The position numbers and the translations under genes were made by a program. Below are positions 2,789-58,615 of a stretch of DNA of 64,000 nucleotides, piece by piece. Source of the DNA: Haliotis cracherodii (Eukaryota); the NCBI RefSeq assembly GCF_022045235.1, contig NW_027266271.1, positions 24,180,001 through 24,244,000 on the forward strand, read 5' to 3'. Positions within the stretch are counted from its first letter, which is position 1. Every line of letters starts with the position of its first letter. The notes under the pieces were generated by a model. That model was not told the DNA's origin and made no database searches. It worked only from the letters and a program-made list of their open reading frames with translations.

Positions 2789-5700
2789 GTATTGTGACGG
2801 TTACTCCAGAAATAGAGGCTCTCACGACAAACCTGCTGTGTTCGAACCAAACTGCCGTGCTTGCAGCTCAACAACAATGCTTGAGTTTGCACAATCTTCC
2901 GCTCAGTATTCAGAACCCTCTGAGTCTGACCACTGGGGACCACAATGCTGTCATAGCGGCCAACACTCTTCTAATAAGCAACACTGTATTAGTGTGCCAG
3001 TGAGTATGCTGTGTCTGTCTGATTGTTTGTTTGTTCTTTAACGTCGTACTCAGTCATATTACAGCTATATGATGGTGGTCTGTAAATAATCGAGTCCGAA
3101 GCAGACATTCCAGTGATTGATGCCATGTGTTCGATCTGCCCAATTGGGATACGATGACATGCATCAACCAAGTTAGTGGGCCTGACCACCCGATCCCGTT
3201 AGTCGTCTGTCACGACAATTCTGGGGCACTGAAGATCAAGTGTAACCCGGATCTTCCCAGGGGCAGTATACTGTGCAGTGGCAGTAAGCTCTAAAGTAAC
3301 TCAGATGGTCATGTGGACCAGGTAACATGTTTAAGTGATTAGACAAATGGAATGTGTACATGAACCGTAAACCCTCGCTTGAAATAACATTTGTTTGTTT
3401 GTTTATATATTTGTAACGCCTCACTCGGCAATACTCAAGCTATATATTATGGTGGCCTGTAAATAATCGATTCTGGACAATCCAGTGATTGATATATATT
3501 CAATCAATCAATCTTTATTCGAGCACTTGAAAGGCCACAGAGCCAAAGGCCCATAGTACATATGGCAGACGTGTTAGGCACAATGTGAACTATTATATAT
3601 ATATGGCCAAGTTTTGTCGGAATTGTCGGAATTTAACAATAGATTGATCTTTGATCATTAAAGTAGAATACAGGAAAATATTTTTTCTGGCAGTGGAGTA
3701 CAATGGACATACAAGTACAAAACCCTTTACCTTGACTATTTCACATTTGAAGGTTTTGTATATCTTTCACTCTCGATGCAAAATCATGGGATAACATCGA
3801 AATATTACCAAGGAATGAGGAAAATTTACATAAAACAGATAGAGTTCAGTGTACATATGCATTTTCAAAATTCTTTTATATAAGAATTTGTTCGATAATG
3901 TCAAGGAAAATGACCATGATTGCAAATAAATGTCTATAACACTCTGTAGAAAAGAACTGATATATTCACTTTCAGATTGTACAATCAGAAATTTCCCAAA
4001 CCACTATTGAATAACAATATTTGCACATCGGTTACCCAGTTATTCTTTCCATTCGTATTCTATAACATCATCATGTTGTAACATTTCACAGAGTACCTCG
4101 ATGAATTCATTTTAAGGAGTTTCAGTCAGTACTTAATAACGTTTAGCTGTGAATATATAAATAGAGGAAATCTACCACATTCTCCATAAACCATTGCTCT
4201 AGATGTGTTGGTTTTTACACCAAGAAACCTTTCACATTTCACATTAAATTGTTTTAATTCCCATATTTCAGCACCATAAAGTAAAATTGGATTAAATTTA
4301 ATATAAAAATTATATATAAAGAATGACTATGATATTGCGAATAACGACCCACGCCTTCGGGTGCAATGACACTCTCTTAACCAAGTCACCGATTCTAACC
4401 ACTCGATCCATTTGGTCGCCTCTTACGGCCAGCATAGGTTGCTGGAAACGTACACCCTTCAAAAAAAGAAACGCACAGGTAGTATGTATTTCATTGAACC
4501 TGACTACACAAATGATCCGGTATATAAATTGGATATATGTTGGAAAATTTTGGTTGCCTGATATTCGACAAACGATACGTCAAAACGCAGCCATTGTCGA
4601 TTTGCAATGTATTAAACGGCATTGTTTTCACACTTGTTCAAAAGTGTCATGGAGGAAAATAGTAAAGCAAAACGGAGGTGCAAGTTATGGCATTCGGGTG
4701 TCAACAGGACAACGCTCCACTGCAAACATCAACGGCTAGCCCTGGCCGTCGACATATCCATATCTCAACCCAATCGAACACCTCTAGGATGAACTCGATC
4801 GACGTGTGCGTCAACGTCAGAACACGCAGAAGACACTCCCACAAATGGCCAACACCTTACTAGCAGACTGGTGCAGAATTGTGCAGGACATAATACGTAC
4901 AATTATCAAGTCAGTGCCGAGTAAATGCACAGCCGCGATTGCTGCCCGGGGCGGTCACACTGAGTTTAGCGTCACCTTGCGGCATTATGTGACATGACAA
5001 TGAACAGTTTTCAATTCCTTTGTACAACGACAACATGTGACTATCGAGCTCAAACATTTCATATTTGTATCTATGATATTAAATTAGATATATCGATTTC
5101 ATTAGGTACAATGAATTTACTAAAAATCTGTGCGTTTCTTTTTTCTATGGAGAACGTATTCTATTCCAAAATCGCAGGGCCCTGAAATATCAAAGATGTT
5201 GCACTTTTCATATTGTATTATTTTGTGTGAGTCAGGGCCAACGTGGACAAATAGATCTTAGTACAGCATTGTGGTACCATGTTAAAATATAGGAATGACA
5301 ATAATGAAAGAAACCGTTCCAGAATCAAAAATATCGAAAAGAAACTGTCCAATGCAGCTGAGATAACACCGGCCTAGAGCTAATTTTTATAAGTTAATGT
5401 CATGACATTTTTCTCGTCCTTTTTTCCCACAAGAAATACTGAGGCTTACTCCAAAGTTGTTCGCTGCCTCCAGTACATCATATACAGCTGCGATGATAAC
5501 AGGAGTATACCCATTGCGGCCTACAGTACATCGGATAACTCGCAGCAGCTGAATGCAACGTGTTCGTTTCTATCAAGTGAGATTTTAGTGTGGCGTGAAG
5601 ACGATCAAATGATTCTTAATCCCTTTTAACCTGACGAATTAAAGTAAGAATTAAGAGAATATTTGGACATTCGCCTGATCAAAGTGTTATCATGACAAAT

Positions 5701-8700
5701 TCATTGACACCTGGAGACATGAAACAGAGCGACACGCCCTTAAAGAGGCAATACATTAAGAATATCAATATCGGGTGTGACCACCATTTGCGTTGATACA
5801 GACGAGGAGGTGCATTGAATACACCAGATGAGTGAAAACAGCATGGGAGACTTTGTTCCAAATTTCAGTCAATAATTCTGACCAACTGAGCTAGCGTTAT
5901 CGGCTGGTTCTGGTCCTGTCGTAGGTGTCTCACTATCTCATCCAAAACACGTTTATGGTCGAGAGGTCTGGAGAAACATCCGGCCATGGAAGTACAACAA
6001 TTTATGTGCCAGGTTCTCCTTACCGCATGTAGTCCCATGCACGACCATCCAAGTTTTCCTGGAAACTTATCTGTGGAATAGTTTACTGTCACAGTCTTTT
6101 GAACCTCAGCTGTTCCAAGTTAGGCGTGCCGGACGGTGACAGGGAAGCAAAATTGGGCGTATCGATGGACGTCGGGGTCGGATGTTGAGCTCCCTCAACC
6201 GGTTGCGTACGGTTCTGCCATAAATTGATCTCAACCGAGATGTGGCAGTTTGGTATCAATTCCATAATGCACCAACAAAATATGGTTGTCTTGTTGACGT
6301 GACGTCACACGTAGATGAATGACACCTTGGCGAGTGTTGACCGCCTATAGATAACGCCACCAAAGAGATGATATTGTGTTGCGATGAACATTAAGATGTC
6401 TGGCAACTTCGTTTTGCGCCATTCCTGTATGGCCCAGCAGTTTAAGGCGCCGCGATTCGCTGTGCAGAGTTGCGCCGCGATATAACTGTAATACTGTTAA
6501 AAGCGGCGTCAAACCCAACTCACTCACTCACTCATACGTTGAGTTTCAGCAAGCCATGGTATTGCATAAAGGTTATCAATTTTAAAGAGAAGTATCTTGA
6601 TGAGGATCTGATAGTTAAACAAACTTTACATGATATTCACGTTAAAAATACACGTGTAGCAGTATCATGCAAACAAACACACAAACATCCAAATTGTGCG
6701 CCGTACATTAATATGCACTTGCAAACTGTGTATCACGACCTTCAAGTCGAGGAGATATCTTAATGAATATGTATTGAAAGATTTTGAATAAATTAATTCT
6801 TTTGAACTTTATATGAAGCACAGTTACTTTTTCTGTTAGTATAGTATACCACTGAGAGACACAAATAATAAATGCAAAAAAAATGGAATATGATTATTTA
6901 TGACTGATTATGTCTACGTTGTATCAGTAATCCCTGTCTCCCGTCTTAGATTTTTGCTTTCGTTGCAGGTAGTCCTGTCGCCTGTGTATACTCTATATTT
7001 ACTCAACTTAATGAGTGTTCACGACAAGCCGTGCAAGAATTTGGTGGAAGTGAAACAGATACGTGTTTGTAAGTTGACAGTTGACAGTTGACTGTCAGGT
7101 GTTGCATTAACTATACATTATTAAGCACATAATGCTTCGAACATTGCATGTAATGGACCATATGACCACACTCCTTAGGCGTGTATTCCCGTTCAGACTG
7201 ACCTGAACTGATCTAATCCCTAACACAGTCACTCCCATATAGTTGAAACACTCAAATCATTTACAGCTAACAAATAAACAAGTGTGCGTGTGCGTGCGTG
7301 TGTGTGTAAGTTTGTGCATGTGTGCGTGTGCGCGCGCGTGTGTGTGTGTCTGTGTGTGTGAACATCATCAATTGTTTTCGGGGATTCATTCATATTTTTA
7401 TAACCGCTATTTTGTTTTTTTAAGCCCAATTCAATCTGTTTTGACGGATAATCAAGACTGATTACTTTCTGATTGTAACGTTTGATATTTCGCTACGTTA
7501 CTAGCAATACTAGCAATAAAAAGGCCCGCAGTACCTTACCTTACGCCTTACTAAATTCGGAAAGGTGGTCATCTATGACTTGTCTTATTGCTTCATCGCA
7601 ACCCGGAGTTGTAGATCTTTGGTCATGCTTTCACTCCTTTGTTAGCTTGGTCCGGGCTCAGTATTACTTGCAGGCCCTCGCGACATAGCTGTGACACTGA
7701 CTGCGGAGTTAACTAAATTCACTTACTCAATCGCTGTATTTCACAAAAACGTTATCTTTATATTTTCAAGTATACTTCAAGTGTAAGTATAGAGTAGGCT
7801 CTGATAGGTTTCGATGCATATGTAATGTATCTATCAAAGGTAAACAATAAAAGGTTCACTCCCTACTCCCCTGTTGGTCTTCCAATACTGCAAGGGGCAT
7901 AAGTAGCCCAGTGGTTTAAGGAGCGGCTCAATGTGCCACGCTGCGTCTCTCATCCGTGACAGCCAGATCCGCGGATCAAGGGTTCGAATCCCAGAATCTC
8001 CTGATCAAGAGCTGTGTTCTGTATCCGATTGTCTCAAAACTATATCCGCGATCATGGGTTTTACCAAAGTGCTAAACGTCTAAGATCTGCATCACTTTGT
8101 GCTTTCCTCACACATTAATGTAATATGCCATAAAATACTGTCCAAAGCTGCGTTGAAAAGTAACTCACTCAATTCACTTATTCCTAGGATGCAGGCTAAG
8201 ACTGATGTTTGTTCATATCCACTGCTGCGGTTATGTGGCGATGCTGCAGTACGCATCTACGAAGATCAAACGAGGAATGATACCGGCTGCAAAAATGAAC
8301 CAGGTATGTTGTTCTTTGTTAATATATATACATTGTTAATCTCATGGTATAAGGTAAGACATAGGTAAGACATAATGAGTTACATCTGTTTCACTGAGAA
8401 TGTCATGAAAAGCGTTTGAATTTGCCCTCAAAATATTTATTTAATATGCTTATCAGTAAGCTACGGCTCAGAATAGTTACCTTAAAATGCGTGGACGTAA
8501 CATGTGTGCGCGTCATACGTAACTCCAGAGCAAGACATCATTCGTTGAAAGCATATAATCAAACGGGGCTGTGGAACCAGCATTTCTCTTTGCGAAAGGA
8601 AGGTGAGGTTACAATTGTCATATTGTTTCTACTGATTGCACATTGTATCATTAGTATTTTACTTATGTGTTCCTTACATAATGTACCTGTTGGTTCCGAA

Positions 8701-11700
8701 CTTAGGTCCTGTATTAAAATACGGAATATAAAGCAAATGTTGGAACCAAAACCAAATTCTTAATTCTTAACCTTGCAGCACTGACAAGGTTGCGGTAGAA
8801 CTGTCAGAACTGACAGATGGTAATCCTTGCGTGTGGGCTCTGTTTCCTTATCACTTATCGTGAAGTAAGAATTACCGGCAGCTTGATGTGTCGTAGTCTG
8901 AAACAACACCCCACAATTCACAAGATAGGCATATGTAATTAAGTACATACACACGAAAACAAAGATAAGTAAGGACTGTCGTTATCATCGAAATATCTCA
9001 TCGCTCCTGGAAGTTGTGCAAAGGTGTTGGACCACTTTGATTAGAGAGTTCAAGAAATGTTACACAGCCAGCGCGTACGATTTCAATATTTTGTGGTAAA
9101 GTCAAGATAATGTCCAGACATGCATGTTCTTTTCTTTGTGTGCGTCACAAATAATCTGCATCATTTATGAGTGTTTTCAAACAATTATGAGCTGTTTCAC
9201 AAATTAAATCAAAAGAAATCTGAAGTTTAGACACTTAGGCATCCCCTTCTCGGGATAGATGAAGCAAAATCGCGGCCTTTTGTCGGTATTTGTGAATGTT
9301 ACACTTGTAAGCATTTGAATAATTATTCCTTGCGATCTATGACCACAGATACAACAGTCGAACTCTCAAATGGACATACGCACCGCGTTGACTGTTCAAC
9401 GACTAAAGGGATACAGGACGGAGCTCTTGACTGCTTATTGTACCATGGTATTTACCTTGAAGTGCCTCAGTTGTCATCACCGGAAGAAACGACGGATTAC
9501 ATACTGAAACGTCTCACAGTGTCCCAATATAGAGACATGTGCAGGTAAAAGTCACATTGTCATGTTGAAAATACAAAATAATAATACTCAAAGAACACAG
9601 TGGGTTCGTTATGAACGACATTTTCTTAATCCGATTTTTATATATCTTTTATATAATAGGGTTTGAAAGCATTTAATGAAACTGGTATTGCATGCTTGCA
9701 CTACGGGGTGCCTTTAATGGTTTCTGGTTTCTTTCTTATGATAATTTTATAGTTTCTACCGACCGATTAGTGAAATGTGTGCGTGTGTGTGCTTGAGTGT
9801 GTGGGTGCGTGCGTGCGTGTGAGTGCGTGTGGGGGCATTCTGTTCACGTTTGCTCCTGTAACATTGTTTATTCGCCTTCTCAGCAACATTTCGGCCTTCC
9901 ATAACGCTGTCAGATGTACCCTTGCTGTCCTGACCCGGTGCAGTCCGTCCAAGCGACACCTGTTTGCTGACCCCCATTCTGCCACTCTCGGAATGACCTC
10001 CTTCTGCGAACACAAGGATTTTAATAGTAGGTGTAATACAAACGCTAAAACACAAATGTTCATTGTTTTAGCATGAAGATTTAGATATGCCTCGGTAGAT
10101 ATTCGAGACTGGTTATTCTCTGGCGTTGACCTTTTGAATTATGTTTTCTTTCAACTTTGGCTTTGGTTGCACACCAGCAATATATGACATTTCTGAGACA
10201 TGTTTTTCCTGAAAATGCAAAGCTTTTCTCCTTTCTCTTGTGTTGCTGATTGTCTTTTTCAGAATTAGTATTTTAAACACATGTATCATTGACATGAGAA
10301 AATGATAATACTGCACATTCTTTTGCAAATCGTGTCAGTGGCGGCTGCTACCGGTAAAGCAGGGCAAAGCAACCATATTGAAAAATCTATTCACGGCCAT
10401 TACTCGGTCCTTTTTGTACTAAATGTAATTAAATGTTGTAATTGTCTAGTCTGTGGCGACCTGCAATAGTTCATATGTTGACCTTGTTTTTACCATGCTC
10501 TTAAAATCTCTCAAAATGCACATCTGGTTCCGTAAACTCCGTCTCTTCTAAAATCGCCAGGCAGGTAGCTTATCTTTGACATACACTTTTTTCCATAGGA
10601 TTCTGTTTAAAACAATATTTATGCAGAGTTTAGAATTTAAGCAGAAAATGTATAAATATTAATTTTTAGTGGCTGTCCTTGTTGGCATCATAAATTACAT
10701 ATCCAGGTGAGCTACAGTGCAGTGGCACTTTTCATTTGGTAGCTCAATTATCAGTTGTTCAGATTTTAGTTTGTATATTTCTTTAAGAAAGACATCAATC
10801 AAGGAAAAAAAACTTTAAATTGATTGTACAATAATTACAATGATTTGGACCTCGAGTTAAGAGTTTATCGTATGTTGTTTTTCTAGAGTTTGCCTCCAGT
10901 TGTGTGATGAACGCCGACCAGAGCACCTGTGAGAAAAGGATGTTTAATTCCAGCACGCCCGAGCAAATATGCAGGTAGATAGATAAAATGTTGATTGAGG
11001 ATATGTCTGACCATTGCATTATTAAAACATGTGCTGCTTTGTAGCTGTTTGATTGGCATTCTAGAAGTTGGTGTGTAAGAAAGTAAACGAACAACTCTAT
11101 GTATAACATTTTTAAGTTGTACGTTTTCTTACTGCGTTGTAGTTATGTGAATATGGGTAATAATTTACTGTTAGTGCTTCGATAAAACAGACCCGTGGTT
11201 ATTCCATTGCAAGATTGGTCCTCTAGTGTCCTAAAGGATGGCCAGACTCTATGACTTGAATATGAGTGTGTAACAGTGCTCCGTGTCCCGTTCCTAATGC
11301 TTTCAAACCCGGGATTCGAACACACAACGACCGGTTTCTGGCAGCTATAGTGTGTCGTCGTAAAGCACCGAGCTGCTGTAATACCTGTTCTTGGATCTAT
11401 CCCCTGACAAGTGATATACCAAAAGTTGTCAAGAATCAGGCAGAACTCGGGGTATTTGTACATGTATATTGATTTACAACTGATTTCGGAGTAACATAAA
11501 TATGTATATTTCTGATGTACGTACAATCTCCTTTAACCTCACGACAGTGACAAGCCAGTGATTGACATCATGAGAATCGATTTACGCAGGATAGGATACG
11601 ATGGCATGCGACAACCAAGGCAGCGAGCCTAACAACCAGATCCCGATAGTCCTACGAAAAGCCCAAATTCTAACCATGAACTTCACGGGGACCCGAGATT

Positions 11701-11986
11701 GGAATAAGGTGTTGAAAGTTTATGAACCTAATTTACTTTTTTTGTACCCCCCAACAGTATCATCCAAACCTTCACCGACTGCATGAAAGCCTCTGTGGAA
11801 TCCTGTGGTCCAAGCACTGCTGAACTGTACACGCACCTGCTGTCATCCCAGGTCCCCGCCCCCTGTGCGCAGGGGGGAAGGACGACCACACCCATCCCCA
11901 AGAGCCGGGCTGGCAAACGTGTGGCTTCAATGTTAATGACAGTACTCGCATTTATATATTCGAGAGTTGGAGTATCTCAGGGGTAA
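2789..11986 (+). CDS. Gene A: 24-Cys, four-module extracellular glycoprotein with C-terminal hydrophobic (GPI-signal-like) tail; 5' signal exon not located
   Basis: Eight GT-AG exons splice into one open frame of ~408 aa: 2789-2999 (IVTVTPEIEALTTNLLCSNQTAVLAAQQQC...VLVC), 5434-5576 (NTEAYSKVVRCLQYIIYSC...NATCSFLS), 6969-7068 (SPVACVYSIFTQLNEC...TDTC), 8188-8303 (MQAKTDVCSYPLLRLCGDAA...TGCKNEP), 9349-9544 (TTVELSNGHTHRVDCSTT...LDC...RDMC), 9884-10026 (NISAFHNAVRCTLAVLTRC...SFCEHKDFN), 10887-10974 (FASSCVMNADQSTC...EQIC), 11758-11986 (IIQTFTDCMKASVESC...APCAQGGRTTTPIPKSRAGKRVASMLMTVLAFIYSRVGVSQG*). Phases 1,2,1,2,1,2,1,2. Three Cys per exon. Sequons NQT, NRS, NAT, NDT, NIS, NSS. Same architecture as B, B' and C. 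Confidence 0.85.
3021..3262 (-). mobile_element. SINE-like repeat, (caaa)n-tail family
   Basis: Reverse complement aligns with 58078-58341. Sits ~20 nt after the exon 2 donor of A. Confidence 0.75.
3500..4320 (-). mobile_element. Degenerate LINE 3' fragment
   Basis: Minus strand gives PILLYGAEIW (~4262-4291) and other decayed post-RT segments. Ends in aataaagattgattgattga. Confidence 0.55.
4451..5158 (+). mobile_element. Internally deleted Tc1/mariner DNA transposon inserted into a SINE
   Basis: Imperfect inverted ends (aaaaaaagaaacgcacag ... ctgtgcgtttcttttttc). Decayed DDE motifs QQDNAP and WPS-x3-LNPIEHL*DELDRRVRQR. The SINE sequence resumes on the other side at a TA. Confidence 0.75.
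5690..6845 (-). mobile_element. Degenerate Tc1-like transposon
   Basis: N-terminal HTH GMAQNEVARHLNVHRNTISSLW (~6360-6425), LDEIVRHLRQ...PITLAQL, and terminal GGHTRY* (~5766-5786). Interrupted by a SINE piece at ~6431-6535. Confidence 0.7.
7282..7359. repeat. Compound (GT)n/(GTGC)n microsatellite; similar tracts at ~9775-9831, 25373-25414, 41014-41066, 46824-46878, 60172-60200, 63158-63184
   Basis: Direct inspection. Confidence 0.9.
7894..8170 (+). mobile_element. Old tRNA-headed SINE carrying the duplication breakpoint
   Basis: A box gtagcccagtggtttaagg, B box ggttcgaatccc, body aaacgtctaagatctgcatcactt...ctttcctcacacatt, and aactcactc tail ending just before the exon 5 acceptor of A. Confidence 0.7.
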
Positions 11987-12672
11987 AACCCGAACAACCT
12001 GAATGTGGACTTTCTTTTGTACTATTTTCTTTTAGTTTCTTAAAATACGTTACAAACTCCACACATACAAATTTCACAACGGGTCAAGGGGCTTTCATGG
12101 CATTTTCGAGCTGTGACGTAATAATATATTTTGATCGAACTTACACATTGAGTTGCTTTTGCATGTGTTTGTGACAGGTGCCACCGGTTGGGCAGGATAT
12201 GCTCACCTTTTCGCGAACACCTGGTATCATTACTATTTAATTGTGATTCATCAACACATGCTCATGATATGATCGGAATTGTATAATCGACTCTGCTTTA
12301 AGCAGAAAGTTCTATTGGATTTGGAAAGGGTTCTGTCGCCCTTATTTACAAACCTCATATTAATATTTGTTTGTGTTATCAGCTAGCACAGAACCCGATC
12401 AGAGACTGAATTCTTGTTCTGTGGTTATCTTAAGTCAAACTACAGCCAATAATTATTTATAATATATAACTCTCGGGTATTTTTATTGATTTTTATCCTC
12501 AGAAGGTCATGTTTGAAAAATATTACACTTCTAAACATGGGTTAGCATTGCAAAATACCTGGACAAACCAGGAAAACACAGGAATAACAAACCTTAAATC
12601 AACTTTGATGTAAATATTTGAACATATTTAATCTCCCTTTAAGCTACGTGAAGCTGTAACTGACAATCTTCA

Positions 12673-12736
12673 TCAGCCAATTACGACTGATCCAGCGGTC
12701 AGACACATAGACGGCGATTGGCTACGCAGGAGGTCT
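12673..12736 (-). pseudogene. Displaced 3' half of the original B-type last exon
   Basis: Translates DLLRSQSPSMCLTAGSVVIG*, matching the B' C-terminus (28269-28333). Lies ~100 bp downstream of the current B stop codon. Confidence 0.8.
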
Positions 12737-12837
12737 TGCGCATGTAATTTATATATTTATATATGCATATATGTATGGTTGAATCATTGGTTAACTGCAG
12801 TACAATCGCGTATTTATACTGTCATGTAGGATTTTTG

Positions 12838-21144: not shown

Positions 21145-21149
21145 GGTTG

Positions 21150-21350: not shown

Positions 21351-21479
21351 CTCTGGGTATAGCAAATGTACCACCAAATTTCTGTCTTGAAGATTAACCA
21401 CTATCCTTAAAACAATAAGGAAGTGGAATTATTAATGTGGATTCTCTAAAACGCAGAGGATTTGCTTGACTTTTTACAA

Positions 21480-22150: not shown

Positions 22151-22251
22151 ATCTGCTGAATCTGTCATTACTAATGACTATAAAATACCCCTAACTTTTT
22201 GTGGCTGAATGTGTATATCTCTCTCTACAGCCAAAACAGTGAAATACAAGA

Positions 22252-23536: not shown

Positions 23537-23730
23537 TCATGGGTTCGAATCCAAGAATCTCCTGATCAAGAGCTGTGTTCTGTATCTGATTGTCTCAAAA
23601 CTATATCCGGTTTTACCAAAATGGTAAACGTCTAGGATCTGCATCACTTTGTGCTTTCCTCACAAATTTATGTGATATGCCATAAAACACTGTCCAATTC
23701 TGCATTGAAAGTTAACTCACTTAACCCTAG

Positions 23731-43012: not shown

Positions 43013-43581
43013 AACCCGAACAACATGAATGTGGACTTTCTTTTGTACTATTTTCTTTTAGTTTCTTGAAATACGTTACAATCTCCACACATACAAATTT
43101 CACAACGGGTCAAGGGGCTTTCACGGCATTTTCGAGCTGTGACGTCATAATACATTTTGATCGAACTTACAAATTGAGTTGCCTTTGCATGTGTTTGTGA
43201 CAGGTGCCACCGGTGGGGCAAGATATGCTCACCTTTTCGCGAACACCTGGTATCATAACTTTTTTATAGTGATTCATAAACACATGCTCATGATATGATC
43301 GGATTTGTATAATCGACTCTGCTTTAAGCAGAAAGTTCTATTGGATATGGAAAGGGTTCTGTCCTTTTATTTACAAACCTCATATTAATATTTGTTTGTG
43401 TTATCAGCTAGCACAGAACCCGATCAGAGATTGAATTCTTGTTCTGTGGTTATCTTAAGTCAAACTACAGCCATTAATTATTTATAATATATAACTCTCG
43501 GGTATGTTCTTTGATTTCTATCCTCAGAAATATTACACTTCTAAATACACTGTCAATAACATAGGTTTTCATTGCAAAATA

Positions 43582-43624
43582 CTGGGTGGCACTAGTGGCA
43601 CTGAAAACAAGCAAAAACACTTCC
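43582..43624 (-). pseudogene. Remnant of a third B-type gene (acceptor plus first codons of last exon)
   Basis: ctgggtggcactagtggcactgaaaacaagcaaaaacacttcc matches B' ~28389-28431. It is followed directly by LINE ORF1 sequence, so the rest of the gene has been deleted. Confidence 0.7.
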
Positions 43625-47337: not shown

Positions 47338-50300
47338 TTAGCCAATCAGCGCCGACGTTGATCCAATCTTTGTCTTCAGACACATAGACGGGGATTGGCT
47401 GAGCAGGACATCTTTGTACATGCTGACGGTCGTCTTGCTGCAGCCGCTCACTGCCGACACCAGACACTTCTGGGTGGCATTAGTGTCACTGAAAACAAGC
47501 AAACGCACTTCCAGAGTTACCATATACAATCCTGAGTAGAAATATCATATGAAAACATTTGCATAAAAAACTCTTAAAATAGTTCCCGTTTTACAGAAGC
47601 GTGTCTCTCTCCGTCGGTATATTCCTTGTAGCTTGTCGGTACGTTTAATTAACACCTGGCAGTTCCAATGTCTGACTGGAAATAGTGTCACCACGTCACC
47701 GTGGTATGGATCGTTCCTAATGCCTGACCACGTGGAGATTATTATTAAGTTGTCTAAATATTTTTGTAATATTTGTAACACATTATGAAGAGTACATCGT
47801 TATATTCTATGCTGCTTCACACGAGCATTGACTCCTTTACCTATTATCTACGTGAATACAACTTTGAGATGACAAAACATGATTTAGCAACTGCAGTGGG
47901 AATTCATCCGAATGGTGAAGTTTACTTACTCGCACAGATGTCTCAGGATAATTGAAGCCAAAGAGCGTCGTTTACTGCCGCACGCTGCTTTAGGTGCATT
48001 TTGAACACACTTGGTGTCGAAATCTAAGAACAGATCATCGTAAGGATGGTTCAGTGTATTATTCCGAAATTAAAGCAAGTTCCAATTAATTGCAGGTAAC
48101 CCCTCTCCTCAAATATACATGGCTTCTGTTTCTGTTTTGATGCTTAATTCATTTTAAAAATGTCAAATTTTACCGTCTAAATATCAACAGGTAAGCCATA
48201 TACGTTTCCTTTTCCGAAAAGATACACATATAAATAACAGATCGACATCATGTCGCATATCTCACCCCCAATGTGGCCGCAGAGTTTAGCCAAGCCGTCC
48301 TGCACTGTCTGGGAGTCGGCCACCGTGGGCTGCATCACGTGGTCACTGCACTGCTTCTGTACCCACAGAGTACAGTTCACAGCCAGCTGGTAGTTCTTCA
48401 GATTACTGTACGATATAGAACGTAAATCTATGTTTACTTTTTAGATCTATGCATAAAAATTCAGAGTGACAAAACACTCTCAGGAATACTGTATGACAAG
48501 AGGGATGACTTCAACTTTTCATCAGTCAACTTTCCATTCATGTCGAGCAATATTCCAGCAGCTTTCTACCTAGATTTCAAAGAGAGTTATACGACTCTTT
48601 CTCAGAAGTTGTTTGATCAAGGTTACAACATTCAAGGCCTCAGTAAAGCATTCAAACAGTTATATGGCAGACGTGATGAGGCCATTCCAAATTTGACGCA
48701 TCAGTGACAAAAATGATGTCCGATGCAATTCACTATTTTGACTTGTGCCATATGTTCCCGTGTTTTGGCAGATGAACATGTGACTTGCTTTTGCATTTGT
48801 TTGTGACGGGTGCCACCGGTGGGACAGGATACGCTCACTGTTTCGCAAACACCTGGTATCATCAATATTCCATAGTGATTCATAAACGCATGCTGATGAT
48901 ATATTAAGAATCGAGGAAGCGCTGCCTAGTCGAACCCATCGAGAACTTTTCGGAGAATGTGAAGACTCTCCAACACTGCATTACCCAGTTTGTCAGAAGG
49001 GCTGTATTCCTGGCAGTAAACCCGGGTACTCTCCCAATGTCAGTCAACAGATTGGAGGGTACCAAACCTAAGGCACGGAGAACAATGGAGAGTCGGACAA
49101 CTTGGTACTTGGGATGCAAGCGTGACATTTCGAAAGCGAGGTCTGCATATTTGCCATGTTATTTCTGAATCTTGTCAATCATATTAGTGCCAAAAAGGAC
49201 AGAAAATTCAATGATATAAATGATTTCATTGGATTTATCAAAAAGGACAAGATCAGGTTTGTTGGCCTGGGTATGTCTGAGGCTGTATACGGGCCTACTC
49301 CAAAGAATTTTGTATTTATCATTTTCCATGATGCCCTCTACATATTCAGGGTCTTACCATGGATGGATCTCTGTGTCAAAACAAAAGTATTGCAAAGACG
49401 GTAATAAAATGATCGGGCCATTCCATTATGTCGCTTAAGACACTGTGTTTTTTCCAAAGCTGGGCATCCACTGACAATGTGTTGGACAGTCTCATTAAAT
49501 TCATTGCACATTCTACATTTCATATCTAAATTTTGAGTCCAAATCACACAGTGGCGGTTTCAAGTGGGAAGTGACTGGTCCTGAGCAGCAAACAGAAAGG
49601 CTGCTGTTTCTGTTTCACTTTTCAGGCCAGTCGACCTCATCCAGGCGAAGGACTCTGCAGGGTTGCTGATCATAAACTGCACATAAACTCGATGCAGTGG
49701 TCGTTCAGATAGCCTTTCCTTGAAAACCTGATTTGATATGGCACTTCGCTTAATTGACACTCATTTCTGTACCGTCCGGCAGTACAGAACTATCAACAAA
49801 ATCAACACTGACATTGAGATTATGTCCCGCATCCTTAGCTCGTTTACGTAAACTGTTGAATGCCTTGTTTTCATCATGAGTCTTGACATGCTTCACGAGA
49901 GGATCATCATCAGACAAATATATGTGTGCAAAAGTGCACAAAACAATTCTATTATGAAGAGCCTCCACGTTGATCAAACCACGTCCTCAAATTGTGATTG
50001 GTAAATATAACCGATTGAGAGAAGAGCGAGGTTGGTGGGATCTATTGTCTGTAGTCCGGATCATCCAAACCCTCTTTGCTGCATTTTCGGCGACAGTGTT
50101 AGCAAGGAAGTATGTACCTGCACAGCTGTAAGCTGTTGAATCGGTGACAGGTTTAGCAAGGAAACCTGTTCCTGCACAGCTGTAAGCTGTTGAATCGGTG
50201 ACAGTGTTAGCAAGGAAACATGTTCCTGCAGAGCTGTAAGCTGTTGAATCGGTGACGGGGTTAGCAAGGAAGTATGTACCTGCACAGCTGTAAGCTGTTG

Positions 50301-53300
50301 AATCGGTGACAGGGTTAGCAAGGAAACATGTTCCTGCACAGCTGTAAGGTGTTGAATCGGTGACAGGGATAGCAAGGAAACTTGTTCCTGCACAGCTGTA
50401 AGCTATTGAGTCGATGACAGGGTTAGCAAGGAAACTTGTTCCTGCAGAGCTGTAAGCTGTTGAATCGGTGACGGGGTTAGCAAGGAAACTTGTCCCTGCA
50501 CAGCTGTAAGCTGTTGAATCGGTGACAGGGTTAGCAAGGAAACATGTTCCTGCACAGCTGTAAGCTGTTGAATCGGTGACAGGGTTAGCAAGGAAACATG
50601 TTCCTGCACAGCTGTAAGCTGTTGAATGAATAACAGGGTTAGCAAGGAAACTTGTACCTGCACAGCTGTAAGCTGTTGAATCGGTGATAGGGATAGCAAG
50701 GAAGTATGTACCTGCACAGCTGTAAGCTGTTGAATCGGTGACAGGGTTAGCAAGGTAGTATGTACCTGCATAGCTGTAAGCTGTTGAATCGGTGACAGGG
50801 TTCGCAAGGAAACTTGTACCTGCACAGCTGTAAGCTGTTGAATCGGTGACAGGGTCAGCAAGGAAACCTGTTCCTGCACAGCTGTAAGCTGTTGAATCGG
50901 TGATAGGGATAGCAAGGAAGTATGTACCGGCTTAACTGTAAGCTGTTGAATCAATAAGTGTCAGCAAGGAAACATGTACCTGCACAGCTGTAAGCTGTTG
51001 AATCGATGACAGGGTTAGCAAGGAAACTTGTACCTGCACAGCTTCTTGTTTTCGTCCAATGTCATTGCGTTCAAGATATATTGACTTGTGGCATCACTGG
51101 ATGGTTGTTCTGGGACAAGGAGCGTTATCCCGTTGTTCATTAAGCATTGAAGGTAGCCCTTTCGGATGGTTTGATCGCTGGAACAGTCCACCTGGACTGT
51201 ATCTACACCGGTAGCGTTGACATCTGATGAAGGTAATATATAACATCAATATGGAGATCACAGGCTTACATTACGTAACTTCGCAAACAGGCAGAGATGG
51301 GTTGAAAGGGTTCCCAATTAATTAAGAAAGTTAATGAAAATGTAAATCTCTTGTCTTATGTTTCTTTAATAGTATTTTGTGAATTAAGTGAAGTAAAAGG
51401 GACAATTTATAACGGGCAATATATTTATGATATGACGTGGTTGAGTAGATCAAGGGTGCCAAAACATTTCGAATCCCGGTTGGCCCTGATTATGTTTCTA
51501 AGCATGTCTAAACCCGTCTCGTGGCTTTCACCACGGTGGTAAACGTCTATGACCTGCATCTCCCACATTCAGCTAATACGCCGAGATACAACGGGAATAC
51601 TATTAAAAGCGGCGCTAAACCAAACTTACTCACTCACTCACTCTTATCTTACGAACGTGTAGAGATTGAAGTGCAGCTGCTTGTGTCTGGCTGTGATGCT
51701 TCGAACATCTGCATGCTGAGTTGACCACAAGCAGGCATGAATCTTCGGCCACATACCATCATCAACTGTGTTGACCTGCCATGCATATAGCAATACATCA
51801 TTTAAATGATGACTCAAGAACACTTCCAAAATTGAAATCACGTAAAGTTAATGATTTCCTTGACGCAATGGCATCAGAATTGAGCAGCTATTTCCTGCAA
51901 TTTGTCAATGTCCTTTGCTCTACCAATGAATATTAAAAGTGAAGGAAATTTAAGTCCACTTTGTGGTAGATTGGTTTATGTGAAAGAAATTCTACTTGAA
52001 TTCAACACGTCCTGCAAGGGAGATCACCTATTTTCATATCCACCCGAACACAAATTAACATTAAATAACCAAAAACGAGGGTAATTTAAGGATATATTTC
52101 ATTTTCGGTTGTAACTTAAATGACAACCTTCTTGCTCTCAAAGACTAAAACATTTCCACATTTTCGTCAGTAAGTGTGTCATCAAGTGATGGAATTCAAA
52201 GAATATACATTAACCTGTTTCGATGTTATGACGTTTGCCTCCTTATCATGGTCCTTAACCTTTGATATCATTAATCTGTTTGCAAAGTTAGCAGCATGTT
52301 TGTTCTGTAACCTGTTCATGGATAGAATATCGCTAACAAAATACTATGAGGAAATACGATGAAGAGAAACCGAACAGGTAGCATGTGCTTGTCATGCACT
52401 AAGGGAATTGTCGTTGACGTGGACGTGGACGTGGATGTGGATGCGGATGTGGATGTGGATGTTAACGTGGCGTGGAGGTGGACGTGGACGTGCGTGGAGG
52501 TGGACGTGGACATCGGTGTGTGGACGTGGGTGTTTGGATGTGGATGTGGACGTGGATGTGGACGTGGGTGTGTAGACGTTGGTGTGGACGTGGATGTGTG
52601 GACGATAACGTGCGCGTGGACATGGACGTGAATGTGGAAGTGGACGAGAACGTGTAAAGTGGGCGGCGTGTTTATGGATGTGGACGTGGTTATGGACGTG
52701 GACATGGTTATGGATGTGGACGTGGCTATGGACGTGGACGTGGTTATGGACGTGGATGTGGTTATGGACGTAGACATGGACGTGGACTTGGTTATGGACG
52801 TGGACTTGGTTATGGACGTGGACGTTGTTATGGACGTGGACTTGGTTATGGACGTGGACGTGGTTATGGGCGTGGACTTGGTTGTGGACGTGGACGTGGA
52901 CATGGTTATTGACGTGGACGTGGTTAATGACGTGGACTTGGTTATGGACGTGGACTTGGTTATGGACGTGGACTTGGTTATGGACGTAGCCGGGGATGTG
53001 GGCGTGGTTATGGACGTGGTCGTGGTTATGGACCTGGGCGCGTGGGTGCATTAGTAAAAGAAATGAATTTGTCCTTCTGGCAAAGAAGAATTTGAATGCC
53101 GAAGTTGGATTTTATATTTGTTGTTATTCCTAATGACCGTTTAATCTGACCTTTGGTACAGTAATGTTTTCAACGTATGCTCGTTCCTCAACGACAGAGC
53201 AACACTAAGAATGCCGCAATCATAACGCACACACATACCTGTGTTATCTGAAGGATTAATATCTGATAGAAGTATCGTAACTTACGCACAAAACGTCCTC

Positions 53301-56300
53301 TGCATTAAATCGGTTATGTTAATACTGAGTGGATCGCTGATGCTGATGGCGCCGGTGATGTTGGCACAATCAACGATTTTCGGCAAAACTTCCTTCAGGC
53401 AGGTTTGGTTGACCTCTTTAGAATCAATCACACGCATAAGGTTATGCAACGAAACCACAACACTAATCAGTTGAACAGACATCTAGTCTGGCGTTTATGT
53501 GTTGTACATATGAGAACTAAATTGTGTATGTGCGAGTGAGTCTGTTTCTACGCCGCAATATCACGGCTGGGGAGACCAGAAGTAGACGTCACACGTTGTA
53601 TCCAAGAGGGAAACCGAACCCAAGCCTTCGGTGCGACGAGCGAACGTTGTCGTCAGTTGTCTTCCCAATCGCCCTGTTGCTCTTTAGACAACGAAAGGGA
53701 TGATATGACTGGAATCGAGAGTACTTAATGATGGTGAAGGAAGGTCTGGCTCGATACTCTTTTTGAAACACAAGACAGAAATCAACTGGAGCAAATGGTT
53801 CTGCTATGTCGAATATAACATCCTCTGGCTAAAAAACGTATCCCGTAAGGTGACATTTGTACTTCGTTCTGCCAATCAAGGCACGTTTTGATACATACTA
53901 CAATAAAAGGATAAAGCGTCACATTGGATGGAGATATATTTCTATGCGGTTCAGTAAATGATAAATATTGTTCTTGTAACTACTTATTTTTAAAAAAAAA
54001 CATACAACATTTCTTAGTTGAATGTTCAATCAAAATTCAAATTATATTAACTAATTTATGAATATAAATACTTCAAAGACTCGGTTCCTATAGACATTTC
54101 TGGATGACGTTTGTATTGTTTTGGTCAAATCCAGTTTTAAAGTGGATACTTAATTTTGCCCGGAATTTCTAAAAGTTATTTTTAACTTAAACCCTGTGTA
54201 TCATGTTTGATCCTACACTTCTATCAAGGTACATAATAAAACAAGAAGACAGCATAGGCTTTTCACAACATATGTCCAGTCCATTTGTCTTTTAGACAAA
54301 GAAATGTATTAAAAACCATACATACTGCCCACGTTTGCGCAGGAATACTCTTCTGTCTTCCGTATTTTGTCTGCCGATGGAAACATATCCTTCAAGAAGG
54401 GTACATCCAGTAAACACTTTCTGGATACCCGACTGCTACACACGCTCGCTTTCACATAACTGTCAATATCACTGAAAATACACAATTGTATACGACACCG
54501 TTATTGCATGAACAATTTGCAAAATCTTAAACTGAATTCTACCAAAAGTTTTGAAAATACTGAGTGAAAATATTTAGACTCATAGTTAAAATTAAAAGGA
54601 AATATCTGGTTGTGATCTGTACCTGAAACATTATCTACTCCACAAACAAAATCTTGACCCAGCTTCCTGAGAGACGTGGTCATGTTCCACGCATTGTTCA
54701 TACACACCTACAAACTTTAGCTGCTGAAGTGGGGTCAAACGTGCTCAACAGGTTTTTCACTAATTCAGTTGGTGATTGTGACAGGTTGCGAAGCATGCTC
54801 GCGGCTGGCAGTTTGAGGGGTACACCGTACACATCAAAACACTTCTGATTCACTGTCATTATACTTGATGAATCGTTGCAGTTTACGAGGTCGGTGAGAT
54901 CGATGACATCGATGGTTCCATTATTCCCTGAAATTGTATGTAATGAGATCAATAAAGACTGCATGCAGTACGGAGAGCTACAAGCTTTCGTTCAATCGGT
55001 TTTACAGAAAATTAGTTAGCACAACATATGATTTTAGCGATAATTGTTCAGCAAGTAGAATGTACCCTTGGTTTAAACAATTTGGTCGACATGGTAAGAC
55101 AAAAAGAAGAAACAATATAAGCTTATCTAGTGATTTGCGTATTGTCTTCACATTTCGAAGTGATGATGATGATGAGTGAGTGAGTGAGTTGGGTTTAACA
55201 CCACTTTGTACAGTATTCCAGTTATATCCCGGCGTGTCAGCTTAATGTGGGAGGAAAGCCCGAAGTGATGCAGGCCTCAGACGTTTACCACTTCCGTCAG
55301 ACCGACGAGCACGGGTATGGTGCTGACAAACCTAGAAACATAATTGGGGCGAACCGGGATTCGAACCCCCAATCATAGGTTTCTGGTGTGGCCAAGGGAT
55401 GCAACTCTGCACTGCGACTTGCGGCGACTTAGGCGACTGGGCCACCCTTGCCCCCTGACATTATGACCCCGATCAGTAGGTCCAAGTGTGCCCTCCAGCT
55501 CAAACATCTGCTCATATCCATAGTTCGTAGATTGTGTTATCTATTGAGAATTGCCCAGGAGCGCGGAAAGATTCAATATATTATCGTCAGAAAATTCAAC
55601 TGTTTACAAGAAAATTCAGCTCGTGGTAAGATTGTTGTCATATGCTTGTCTGCAAAGACGACTTCCGAATTCATAATAGTTTTTCACTTGTCAGTCACAT
55701 ACACGTGCGCGCACTCACATGGTCNNNNNNNNNNNNNNNNNNNNNNNNNNNNNNNNNNNNNNNNNNNNNNNNNNNNNNNNNNNNNNNNNNNNNNNNNNNN
55801 NNNNNNNNNNNNNNNNNNNNNNNNNNNNNNNNNNNNNNNNNNNNNNNNNNNNNNNNNNNNNNNNNNNNNNNNNNNNNNNNNNNNNNNNNNNNNNNNNNNN
55901 NNNNNNTAAGAGTACAATGTCACACTGTTGGTCACACACATATATGGTCGGTTATTCATAAATACACTGTCACACACAGAGACGCGCACACACGTGGTCG
56001 GTTTATCAAGAATAAAATGAAATGTCACACACTCGGCAACACACACGCACGCGCGAGCGCGTACTCATGTGGTCTGTTATTCAAAATACACAGTCCACTA
56101 GTTGGATGTGTCCAGTAGTGCATAACGTTCCACGTTGGCTGACATCATTTCTGCTATTGTAATATAATTGTTATTAAATACAATTATCGTAAATACGATA
56201 TGACGGCTGTTTCTTCCTTTACCTTGGAAGACAATATTTACATAACTATGGTTAGTAATTATTATCAGGACATTTATGCCATTAACTCTTTTGTTGAACT

Positions 56301-58615
56301 AAAATTGTCTCAATCGGACGTTCATTATTGCGTGAATCAGACTGTTTCTTGATTATGAACAGTGTATGGACAATAGACTCGTTTTAGCATATCGGGCTTA
56401 AGAAGACAGTTATATGAAATTCGTTAAGTTCAAACTGTTAGTTTGTAGGAGCATGTTCAATGTGAAAAGTTACAGTCGGAATTTGTTTTCTCATCATGCA
56501 ACCTGGAAAAGGTTAACTCGGGGTATTCAGAACGACATTTCCGACTGTACGACTGATTCCGTAAAAATCCTCGTCTATCTCTCGCTTCGATGGGATAAAC
56601 ATTTGAACGGAAAAGACATTACATAACCCGTGGGAAGTACTGCCATACAAGCCATCTATTAGACATTCCAGAATGTTCCTTTGTTCAGTTTTCATTTTTT
56701 TAATTGAAAATTTCAAAATATTTTTTAAAGCGTAGTTTGGAATGGACGTCCCCAGTTGAGAACAGTGCTGCATAACACGAGAAAGCTGCTTTCTGATTGG
56801 CCAATGTCGTCTTTTTGTTAGTTATTTCATTGGTCGGTCAAAGTTTGCGAAAGGTCGCTCTGACGTGACCCGTAATGGGATGTCCTCAGATCTTTTGCCT
56901 AGCGGTAGGAAGAACTAAGAGCCGCGTTTAATGAAATTGTTAAACGCCACCTACAACATTATTTCACCTTCATCACGGCGGACAGTAAAACATCGAGCTC
57001 TGTCAAGTGAAACCAGCGGTTGGGCAATGATCGACGATGTCGATGTACAGTGACATACAATCAACAATCACAAGTCGAACTCTGTAACCGCCCGGTCCTC
57101 ATAATCGGCTGCTAACGAACCTAATCTTGCGTTGGTGTTCACTAAAGGTTGGGCGGGGGTGAGAATATGTCCCCAGTACACCATTGCTAGGCTTACGAGG
57201 CAACTTAATTGGGAACATGTGAATAATGCGCGTGGGAAATGGTCTTAAGAGGTTATTAAATGTGTTGGGTGGTCAGGTTTTAATGGCTTCGTTGATGGCG
57301 TGTCAACGTACCACGACGAATCGGATCGTTTCTCATAATATCTATCACTGGTCTGTCTGGTCCAGACTCGATTAGGTACAGGCCGCCGTCATATAGACTG
57401 AATATTGCCGATTGAGGCGTTAAATACACAGACGCACGCACGCACACGCAGCAAATTCTGCCTGAGGACGTTCAGTGAACAGCAACGCAAAATTAGTTTT
57501 AATACTTATAGAAACCAAACCGGTTTCCACAATATTTGAGAAATTAAATCATACTTATAGACTATACTTGTAAGTTAAGTTTGATCGATATTTGCAAAGG
57601 AACCTGGCAACGCAGTAAAGTCACGTGAAACTATCCTGGAGAGTTCGCAGTGTCAAGAGATACTAACTCAAGATAGCTTAAGCTGACACTTACTGCGACG
57701 GGTATATAAACCAGTGTTGATGACACAATGCACCTGTTGACAATGTGGGTCTATGCAGAGAGTAATGGGAGTTCCCGGCTTTTAACCGACAGGGATGTTT
57801 GCAAGTTTTTCATACATTAGCAACAGAACAGATGTTTGGGCACACGAATGACTTCTACAGTACCAATGAATCGTCTTTTACATGTTTTGGTGCTGCTTGT
57901 GTCTGCTACCTTCTGAAACCGCCAGTTATTCAACGTGGTAAGTAACATCTGATCATACTGTTTTTCCTTCATTGGATTAAATCTATTTAATGAATCTGTG
58001 GTTAAGTCTTGTGAGTGCACGTGACATGGTGCTTTAGGAGAACTGAGTCATTCAACTGTACTTACTTGTATGCGAAGGACCCGTGAGGATCCGGGGTAGA
58101 ATAGGTCTTCAGCAACCCATGCTTGCTGTAAAAAGCGACCATGCTTGTCGTAAGAGACGACTAACGGGATCGGGTAGTCAGGCTCGCTGACTTGGTTGAT
58201 GCATGTCATCGTATCCAAATCGCGTGGATCGATGCTCATGATGTCAATCACTGGATTGTCTGGTCCAAACTCGATTATTTACAGACCGCCGTCATATAGC
58301 TGGAATATTGCTGAGTTCGGCGTTAAACAACAAACAAACAAATGTAAGCGAAGTTTTATCGAGATTCTCGAAGGCATCATAGAACAATTCAGGTCACGTG
58401 TTTCACCACCCCTATTATTTGATTTAGACCCTCTATCCTATTAAATGGATAATTCCTCAATACCATTGCCGTGAAGAGTTTGTGCAGCGTTAAGCAGTAA
58501 TCACTCACTCGCTTTCACCACACGCGAGACATTTTTAGTGACAGTTTGACAGACATAAAAACGTACCTGAAACCGTCGAAAACAACATAAAAACGAATAG
58601 GCACAAAAGCTCCAT
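47338..58615 (-). CDS. Gene C: diverged paralogue, secreted 24-Cys four-module glycoprotein (412 aa)
   Basis: Exons 58615-58567 (MELLCLFVFMLFSTVS), 54927-54708, 54471-54326 (DIDSYVKASVCSSRVSRKC...YSCANVG), 53415-53286, 51775-51657 (STQLMMVCGRRFMPAC...SSCTSIST), 51223-51034 (VNATGVDTVQVDCSSDQTIRKGYLQC...KKLC), 48405-48266, 48023-47930, 47488-47338. Total 1239 nt open frame. Intron phases identical to B. The unusual GTTCGT donor after exon 5 is shared with B and B'. Confidence 0.88.
48430..48900 (+). mobile_element. Penelope-like 3' fragment; related pieces at ~12100-12300, 13170-13610, 27700-27900, 28620-29160, 43120-43320
   Basis: YDKRDDFNFS...NFPFMSSNIPA, followed by the shared terminal motif ttgtgacgggtgccaccggtgggacaggatacgctcac. 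Confidence 0.65.
48905..50085 (-). mobile_element. R4/Dong-like (restriction-like endonuclease) non-LTR retrotransposon 3' fragment
   Basis: RLYLP...GRGLIN; LKSETE...LFAAQDQSL; CRMC-x7-H-x4-C followed by KRHN; ANKPDLVLFDK; KYADLAFEMSRL...SIVLRALG. Confidence 0.75.
50089..51043 (-). repeat. 54-bp minisatellite, 18 copies, starting at the exon 6/intron 6 junction of gene C
   Basis: Unit (minus strand) ctgtgcag-gtacaagtttccttgctaaccctgtcaccgattcaacagcttacag. Period 54, with one 52-bp unit. Confidence 0.95.
52410..53045. repeat. (GTGGAC)n-derived 6/18-bp tandem repeat in intron 4 of C
   Basis: gtggac/gtggat hexamers, grading into an 18-bp unit gtggttatggacgtggac from ~52670. Confidence 0.9.
55173..55454 (-). 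mobile_element. SINE, same family as 61482-61760
   Basis: Reverse complement aligns over the full length. B box ggttcgaatccc. Confidence 0.8.
55725..55906. other. Assembly gap (182 N) inside a degenerate CA-rich tandem repeat in intron 1 of C
   Basis: N run flanked by repeated gtcacac...tggtc units (~55690-56095). Confidence 0.9.
58078..58341 (+). mobile_element. SINE-like dispersed repeat with (caaa)n tail
   Basis: cccgtgaggatccggg...gtcgtaagagacgactaacgggatcggg...ctggaatattgctgagttcggcgttaaacaacaaac. Near-perfect TSD tgta(t/a)gcgaag. Partial copies at ~3391-3495, 4330-4450, 11545-11697, 16354-16480, 27150-27295, 31685-31815, 57255-57425, 60393-60490. Confidence 0.8.

Follow-up and report, generated by a model that had tools for sequence, protein, structure and literature searches.

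What kind of protein is encoded by a gene in which every exon after the first carries exactly three cysteines? The question is raised by a 64,000-nucleotide stretch of the Haliotis cracherodii genome (assembly GCF_022045235.1, contig NW_027266271.1, positions 24,180,001 to 24,244,000 of the forward strand; hereafter the window), in which a first-pass annotation, made from the letters alone, had proposed a hidden cluster of four intact genes (A, B, B' and C) for an uncharacterised family of 24-cysteine proteins. In our reading, the window probably contains tandemly clustered genes of a family restricted to abalone, whose products would be extracellular, cysteine-rich helical glycoproteins with a modular exon-pair architecture and with both soluble and tethered forms.

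Gene models and exon-pair architecture

Genes were sought with a regular expression (C-x7-13-C-x12-50-C) applied to open frames, and AG and GT sites were then listed around the matches. The scan returned four collinear series of eight matches each, three on the minus strand and one on the plus strand, and splice paths chosen for consistent intron phases could be traced through all four (A, B, B' and C; Table 1). The joined models were translated, aligned and used for the ratio of nonsynonymous to synonymous substitution rates (dN/dS) only, while single exons or RefSeq relatives served as queries for database searches and folding. Genes B, B' and C each consist of a 49-nt signal exon (16 hydrophobic-core codons plus one base, then GTAAGT or GTACGT) followed by eight exons of exactly three cysteines each, and their introns are all GT-AG with phases 1,2,1,2,1,2,1,2. 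The encoded proteins have uninterrupted frames of 399 aa (B), 398 aa (B') and 412 aa (C) with 24 cysteines apiece, counted in the mature protein for C, which has one more in its signal peptide. Exons rebuilt from the sequence thus bore out the proposal of exactly three cysteines in each of eight post-signal exons with phases alternating between 1 and 2. The full frames of B, B' and C likewise upheld three of the four genes as intact; A fell short of this, since no signal exon was found in positions 1-2788 and the gene is therefore incomplete in the window.

Each exon pair forms the symmetric phase 1-1 module of six cysteines that had been described, with phase-1 introns on its flanks and a phase-2 intron inside, the donor lying two bases past the third cysteine in the first exon of every pair in all four genes. 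These modules span ~70-110 residues, and four or five of them follow the signal peptide. Long and short modules alternate, and their cysteine spacing is nearly invariant across nine proteins, at 12/33-42/11-13/7/18-24 for long modules (typically C-12-C-~35-C-11-C-7-C-~21-C) and 8-10/12-25/8/7/17-20 for short modules (typically C-8/10-C-~20-C-8-C-7-C-~18-C). Distances from the acceptor to the first cysteine also agree among the four genes (47-50, 31, 14, 22, 23-44, 31, 14 and 22 nt for the exons in order). Cysteine grid and phases are kept despite an identity of only 24-27% between A and B, as had been pointed out; B and B' are 91% identical and B and C 58%. There are 6-9 N-glycosylation sequons per protein, and the six cysteines of a module would be expected to form three disulfides that staple a small helical bundle.

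When modules were compared using hhalign, modules 1 and 3 proved homologous (probability 96%, E 1e-9 to 2e-9 over 93-98 columns), which supports an origin of the four-module protein by doubling of a long-plus-short unit of 12 cysteines. Modules 2 and 4 were not significantly similar (E ~0.05-0.5) and share the spacing C-8-C-7-C-17/19-C only, and no significant hhalign similarity was obtained between long and short modules. A 1-to-2-to-4 doubling, as initially suggested, is therefore backed by modules 1 and 3, reduced to shared spacing for modules 2 and 4, and unproven in its first step because long and short modules lack significant similarity; an earlier single-module ancestor is conjecture. 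Since every module is symmetric (phase 1-1), module number is free to change without a break in frame. Four modules are found in B, B', C and a paralogue outside the window (D), and five in a further paralogue (E1) and, we infer, in A.

Transcription and splicing of gene B

Contigs from four sequencing runs of four organisms, labelled "RNA?", were compared with positions 15150-21149, which cover part of gene B. Four joints (16181/16808, 16926/17394, 17523/19246 and 19379/20272) were present in all four runs and matched the predicted exon ends to the base, and a fifth (20473/21096) was present in two of the four. At these joints the skipped DNA is bounded by CT..AC as read on the plus strand and hence by GT..AG in the direction of the gene. 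A loose end at 16007 continues into the first 23-27 bases of exon 7 and supports a sixth junction. Five predicted junctions of B are thus confirmed by exact joints and a sixth is supported by the loose end, and run X1, from the same species, contains a spliced contig with zero mismatches to B. Depth was 350-4200 in exons and 5-50 in introns, a contrast of about 100-fold. Together with the joints, this contrast identifies the runs as transcript assemblies, which makes B a genuine gene that is highly expressed and structured as predicted.

All four runs show a huge depth over a repeat in one intron of B (15550-15950; mean word depth up to ~1,000,000), and loose ends number in the hundreds at 15857-15863. 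The repeat probably represents a transcribed and abundant element similar to short interspersed nuclear elements, and open reading frame fragments like those of this repeat recur at ~31000, 55335 and 61457.

Gene A and its probable upstream exons

The part of A that lies in the window encodes 407 aa with 24 cysteines in eight three-cysteine exons, and its frame, cysteines and consensus splice sites are intact throughout. A whole-genome profile search matched a sequence of the exon-2 type 5 kb before the start of the window, in a region where an exon pair and a candidate signal exon sit 7.4-12.5 kb before the first window exon of A. The upstream pair corresponds to module 1: in blastp it matches other copies of module 1 at E 3e-15 to 1e-9, and the first module of A in the window at E 6e-13. 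Upstream and window exons join in frame to give 543 aa with 30 mature cysteines, in the order long, long, short, long, short. Judged from these sequences, A is probably a five-module protein with 30 cysteines, which is supported by the same module order in E1 at another locus; the description of the family as 24-cysteine proteins accordingly suits B, B' and C but probably not A.

Exons 5-9 of A are 100% identical to an H. cracherodii RefSeq protein (P0011), and the A-type RefSeq models of H. rufescens (256 and 155 aa) resemble it. All of these A-type models look truncated, lack a signal peptide and are open to correction. Two further copies of the 3' exons of A in the window, A' and A'', are dead, decaying fragments (Table 1).

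Tandem duplication, probable exon exchange and evidence of selection

Comparison of the window (GC content 35-44%) with itself revealed a tandem duplication with a unit of 15.5-16.4 kb, in copies at 7973-23777 and 23534-40095 and a partial third at 40103-44732. This duplication yielded B and B', both intact, and the two 3' fragments of A, which are decaying. The two assembly gaps both fall in introns and interrupt no exon or reading frame. The flanks of the gap in the B' intron are collinear with the gap-free B intron (17524-19245), and this B counterpart is spliced across in RNA. The signal exon of C, at 58567-58615, is provisionally assigned to exon 2 across the second gap (55725-55906) by its homology to the B signal exon only.

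Synonymous divergence (dS) between B and C is 0.66 in exons 1-6 and 0.14 in exons 7-9, and the low value at the 3' end would fit an exchange of sequence there. The terminal exon of B (12838-12988) is C-like, with 97% identity to the corresponding region of C, and a remnant of a B'-type terminal exon lies stranded downstream of B (Table 1), which suggests exon replacement or gene conversion. All 24 cysteines and all splice sites have been kept in genes with only 24-33% identity, whereas A' and A'' have already lost a cysteine codon or a donor. This retention, together with dN/dS values of 0.53 (B-B') and 0.68 (B-C), was counted as evidence of selection.

Several other features were noted in the window. 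A minisatellite (50087-51043; 54-bp period, ~18 units) begins exactly at the donor of C exon 6, repeating the exon end and donor, and may supply competing donors. The intron between C exons 4 and 5 contains a G-rich, strongly GC-skewed tandem repeat (52350-53130) with 77% self-identity at an offset of ~130 bp. Near the duplication-unit boundaries, open frames at 23082-23246, 39399-39563 and 44925-45410 resemble, by eye, fragments of the endonuclease or reverse transcriptase of long interspersed nuclear elements. An unrelated neighbouring gene or exon at 62152-62559 on the minus strand has a 136-aa open frame, with C-terminal cysteines resembling a MYND-type zinc finger.

Other family members and taxonomic range

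The family comprises at least seven intact-looking genes (A, B, B', C, D, E1 and E2) at three loci, all on contig C8, and genome searches found it nowhere else in this genome. Gene D lies 2.4 Mb from the window and is ~31% identical. Its RefSeq protein, P0013, maps exactly onto nine GT-AG exons with three cysteines each and phases 1,2,1,2,1,2,1,2, and thus reproduces the exon, cysteine and phase architecture independently. Genes E1 and E2 are in tandem and more divergent, and the modules of E1 are ordered long-long-short-long-short. Three cysteines per post-signal exon with phases alternating between 1 and 2 are common to all seven genes, save that one GT donor is absent in E1.

A search of 1.84 billion representative proteins with a profile of exon 6 returned three true relatives, all from Haliotis, and word-indexed searches of a 5.8-billion-sequence set added further entries from H. 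rubra, H. cracherodii and H. asinina, all "uncharacterized"; no relatives outside Haliotis were detected in these protein searches. RefSeq relatives include LOC124135834 and LOC124135886 of H. rufescens, LOC124286785 of H. rubra and unnamed entries of H. asinina and H. cracherodii, and full-length orthologues are present in three other Haliotis species. These models belong to the same family but come without name, domain or literature, and a literature search by locus and accession names returned no paper on the family loci. The cluster was therefore "hidden" in a relative sense only, as relatives are already predicted in RefSeq, but only as uncharacterized proteins. The best H. rufescens match of B is P0009, from LOC124135834 (85% identity, a figure that may compare paralogues), and A is 94.5% identical to its own match in that species. 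P0009 and P0001, isoforms of the same H. rufescens locus, differ by four residues exactly at the junction of exons 2 and 3, which points to an alternative acceptor in H. rufescens, 12 nt inside exon 3.

Fold and domain searches

Models generated with AlphaFold2 were entirely helical for the H. rufescens B orthologue (per-residue confidence, pLDDT, 70.9; predicted template modelling score 0.65) and for an A-type protein (pLDDT 61.1), in agreement with the helical bundles guessed from cysteine spacing. Sequence searches assigned the family to no known group, and the first-pass description of it as uncharacterised stands in Pfam, in PDB sequences and in the literature. Single exons of B, A and E1 had no Pfam match and nine full-length family proteins gave only noise, to which we also assign a pectate lyase match (E 0.016) among the full-length relatives. 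DUF19 (PF01579; cut-off 23.2 bits) was absent from the exons and, at E <= 10, from all nine proteins; DUF1397 (PF07165) reached a best E of 1.9 in two of the nine, short of its cut-off of 25.7 bits, and six-frame genome searches with both profiles left the window untouched. A search of PDB sequences with the family profile produced ROR-beta as its sole match (E 0.12), judged to be chance, and Foldseek found no match in the PDB at E <= 0.001.

A likeness to neuritin and RGM, initially raised from the spacing, was not sustained. The RGM_N profile (PF06535) matched two members at 10.3 bits (E 0.63-0.87), below its cut-off of 24.2 bits, and neither neuritin/CPG15 nor GFR-alpha had a Pfam match in the family proteins. 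Neuritin, GFR-alpha and RGM structures were absent among the top Foldseek and VIA-align matches, a weak structural test that used two models of moderate confidence. GFR-alpha/GAS1 and other GPI (glycosylphosphatidylinositol)-anchored helical repeats work in a similar way: their disulfide-rich domains are all helical and stand in tandem, they carry a GPI tail and they have soluble relatives. They have 10 cysteines per domain, however, compared with six here, and match in neither sequence nor fold. Prosaposin likewise holds four helical six-cysteine saposin domains, and hence 24 cysteines, in one secreted precursor. Saposin domains start with C-x2-C and end with C-x5-C; the spacing in the abalone family differs, and there was no Pfam SapB match and no saposin among the fold matches.

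The suggested likeness to DUF19 had a divided outcome. In a language-model search of the ESM Atlas, D-type and B-type proteins, which are only 31% identical, were both nearest to clusters of DUF19, DUF1397 and CPG4 proteins from nematodes and arthropods (scores 0.89-0.91, with 181-190 of 256 features shared), yet the DUF19 and DUF1397 profiles miss both the window and the proteins. DUF19 (PF01579), DUF1397 (PF07165, 27 kDa hemolymph glycoprotein) and CPG4 (PF15481) resemble the present family in being secreted and cysteine-rich, with a similar unit size and expanded gene families, and differ in lacking a significant profile match and in being centred on ecdysozoans. DUF19 domains have 12 conserved cysteines in ~130-157 residues and occur in secreted proteins in one or two copies. 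The long-plus-short unit has 12 cysteines over ~190 residues, a comparison made with this general length of DUF19 only. In Caenorhabditis elegans, DUF19 forms a secreted family of 51 genes, 14 of which are induced by infection (PMC3534327); DUF1397 proteins have been found in centipede venom (PMC6878950) and, going by the titles of two papers, in insect peritrophic-matrix proteomes, and an oyster protein has been annotated as containing DUF19 (PMC10058639). We treat the link to DUF19, DUF1397 and CPG4 as a lead.

Table 1. Coordinates of the exons, gene copies and assembly gaps discussed here. Positions are those of the window unless given on contig C8; negative positions lie upstream of it.
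Feature	Position	Strand	Evidence or remark
A candidate signal exon, 49 nt	window -9715..-9667	+	AAG/GTGAGA donor
A upstream exon, C-12-C-38-C	window -5281..-5071	+	phase-1 acceptor, AG/GTATGA donor
A upstream exon, C-7-C-24-C	window -4783..-4638	+	phase-2 acceptor, GTGAGT donor
A first three-Cys exon in window, second module-1 copy, first half	2789..2999	+	splice sites, frame; profile match E 4e-13
A module-1 copy, second half, 3 Cys	5434..5576	+	splice sites, frame
A module 2 first half, 3 Cys	6969..7068	+	splice sites, frame
A module 2 second half, 3 Cys	8188..8303	+	RefSeq model P0011 begins here
A module 3 first half, 3 Cys	9349..9544	+	in P0011
A module 3 second half, 3 Cys	9884..10026	+	in P0011
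A module 4 first half, 3 Cys	10887..10974	+	in P0011
A last exon, 3 Cys, hydrophobic GPI-like tail, stop	11758..11986	+	in P0011
Remnant, 3' half of B'-type terminal exon	12667..12740	-	translation ends like B'; 95.5% identical to B' exon 9 region
B exon 9, module 4 second half, 3 Cys, stop	12838..12988	-	splice sites, frame
B exon 8, module 4 first half, 3 Cys	14128..14227	-	splice sites, frame
B exon 7, module 3 second half, 3 Cys	14641..14780	-	model; exon start as loose end, 3 runs
B exon 6, module 3 first half, 3 Cys	16007..16181	-	RNA joint to exon 5; loose end
B exon 5, module 2 second half, 3 Cys	16808..16926	-	model; RNA joints, 4 runs
B exon 4, module 2 first half, 3 Cys	17394..17523	-	model; RNA joints, 4 runs
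B exon 3, module 1 second half, 3 Cys	19246..19379	-	model; RNA joints both sides, 4 runs
B exon 2, module 1 first half, 3 Cys	20272..20473	-	model; RNA joints both sides
B exon 1, signal peptide, 16 codons + 1 nt	21096..21144	-	ATG, hydrophobic core, GTAAGT phase-1 donor; RNA joint, 2 runs
A', 5'-truncated copy of A exons 5-9	23719..27606	+	first Cys codon of exon 5 is a stop
B' exon 9, 3 Cys, stop	28269..28407	-	splice sites, frame
B' exon 8, 3 Cys	29656..29755	-	splice sites, frame
B' exon 7, 3 Cys	30173..30312	-	splice sites, frame
B' exon 6, 3 Cys	31357..31531	-	splice sites, frame
B' exon 5, 3 Cys	32144..32271	-	splice sites, frame; 9 nt longer than in B
B' exon 4, 3 Cys	34107..34236	-	splice sites, frame
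Assembly gap (N run)	35069-35197		B' intron, exons 3/4
B' exon 3, 3 Cys	35679..35812	-	splice sites, frame
B' exon 2, 3 Cys	36705..36906	-	splice sites, frame
B' exon 1, signal	37557..37605	-	signal-exon search
A'', copy of A exons 6-9	40576..43024	+	Cys-to-Phe and GT-to-GC donor in exon 8; 1-nt insertion at exon 6 acceptor
C exon 9, 3 Cys, stop	47338..47488	-	splice sites, frame
C exon 8, 3 Cys	47930..48023	-	splice sites, frame
C exon 7, 3 Cys	48266..48405	-	splice sites, frame
C exon 6, 3 Cys	51034..51223	-	acceptor picked from three in-phase AGs; donor abuts 54-bp minisatellite
C exon 5, 3 Cys	51657..51775	-	splice sites, frame
C exon 4, 3 Cys	53286..53415	-	splice sites, frame
C exon 3, 3 Cys	54326..54471	-	splice sites, frame
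C exon 2, 3 Cys	54708..54927	-	splice sites, frame
Assembly gap (N run)	55725-55906		C intron 1, 3.6 kb
C exon 1, signal	58567..58615	-	signal-exon search; TATA-like box ~35 nt upstream of ATG
Genes E1 and E2, tandem (loci L018, L019, L021, L022)	C8:10771140-10801570	-	three-Cys exons, alternating phases
Gene D, four modules, GPI-like hydrophobic tail (loci L012, L013)	C8:26684113-26693835	-	RefSeq uncharacterized 431-aa protein P0013

Discussion

The reading we favour can be set out as a sequence of events and roles. A long-plus-short unit of 12 cysteines doubled into a four-module protein, and frame-neutral gain or loss of phase 1-1 exon pairs would account for four modules in some members and five in others. 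B, B' and C, which end ~10 residues past the last cysteine, would be released with these short tails, whereas A and D may be kept at the cell surface by a hydrophobic C-terminus that, judged by eye, looks canonical for a GPI signal in D and less so in A. With secretion and a GPI anchor on A and D, the products would be abundant binding or coating proteins outside the cell, sharing one fold in soluble and membrane-tethered forms, and by analogy they would resemble the secreted, cysteine-rich helical DUF19, DUF1397 and CPG4 proteins of nematodes and arthropods.

Several points weigh against this account. The RNA evidence is limited to exons 1-7 of B, and the RefSeq model of A (P0011, 256 aa) lacks a signal peptide and starts at exon 5. 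Confidence in the fold models is moderate, their alignments having held only 8-9 sequences. Language-model scores of 0.89-0.91 are reached by chance in 4-10% of shuffled proteins, and there is no link to DUF19, DUF1397 or CPG4 at the level of profile hidden Markov models. The searches behind the restriction to Haliotis used an exon profile of 58 positions or indexed words and had limited sensitivity, and the proposed binding or coating function is inferred throughout.

How far other explanations fit can be judged from the same data. Hand-built models always run the risk that the exon pattern is an artefact of frames chosen by eye, or that the genes are dead, as A' and A'' indeed are; but exact spliced contigs in four runs refute this for B, all frames are open, exons 5-9 of A equal a RefSeq protein and full-length orthologues exist in three other Haliotis species, and we give this explanation next to no credence. 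Kinship with neuritin/CPG15, the RGM N-terminal domain or GFR-alpha/GAS1, in which a GPI-anchored co-receptor would act with soluble ligands, could appeal to the analogous repeated all-helical modules, to the GPI-like tails of A and D beside soluble paralogues, and to the weak RGM_N match in two members. With the searches described above offering nothing further, we consider it very improbable. The proteins might instead be a divergent lophotrochozoan branch of a DUF19/DUF1397/CPG4 superfamily, one long-plus-short unit equalling one DUF19 domain. D and B types arrived at those clusters independently, and the annotated oyster protein indicates that the domain exists in molluscs, but the Pfam profiles are not significant, the six-frame searches miss the window, and only 3 of the 10 best named atlas matches share a family or clan, an agreement that the tool itself flags as weak. 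We regard this as a tentative alternative, possible but doubtful at present.

A different kind of alternative concerns function, namely a fast-evolving role in recognition (of gametes or in immune defence) with diversity kept by birth and death of genes, in place of a housekeeping binding protein. Tandem duplication, pseudogene fragments and B/C exon exchange all speak for it, as do dN/dS values of 0.5-0.7, an apparent restriction to Haliotis and the lower identity of B than of A to its H. rufescens match, although this last comparison may involve paralogues. No pair has dN/dS above 1, and many RNA runs from 8 studies, in which the share of the stretch was near that of the exons, suggest broad, high expression that is not limited to the gonad, a measure that is itself confounded by the abundant intronic repeat. 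On balance a recognition role appears unlikely. To return to extracellular binding or coating, a bolder extension would make the exon-pair module an unrecognised extracellular helical domain, the lophotrochozoan counterpart of DUF19/DUF1397/CPG4, with GPI-tethered A and D as surface receptors, the highly expressed soluble B, B' and C as decoys or ligand carriers, and module number tuned through phase 1-1 pairs; we put it forward as a long shot of similar standing to the recognition role.

The cluster provides a clean, RNA-verified example of a protein assembled wholly from exon pairs that act as frame-neutral modules, each exon encoding one disulfide-rich half-module. A single locus displays module gain (five compared with four), tandem gene duplication, exon exchange and pseudogene decay. 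It defines a highly expressed and seemingly abalone-specific family with secreted and probably GPI-anchored members that lies outside the domain databases. If true, the link to DUF19, DUF1397 and CPG4 would unite large orphan families of nematodes, arthropods and molluscs in one extracellular superfamily, and would offer a tractable route to their function.

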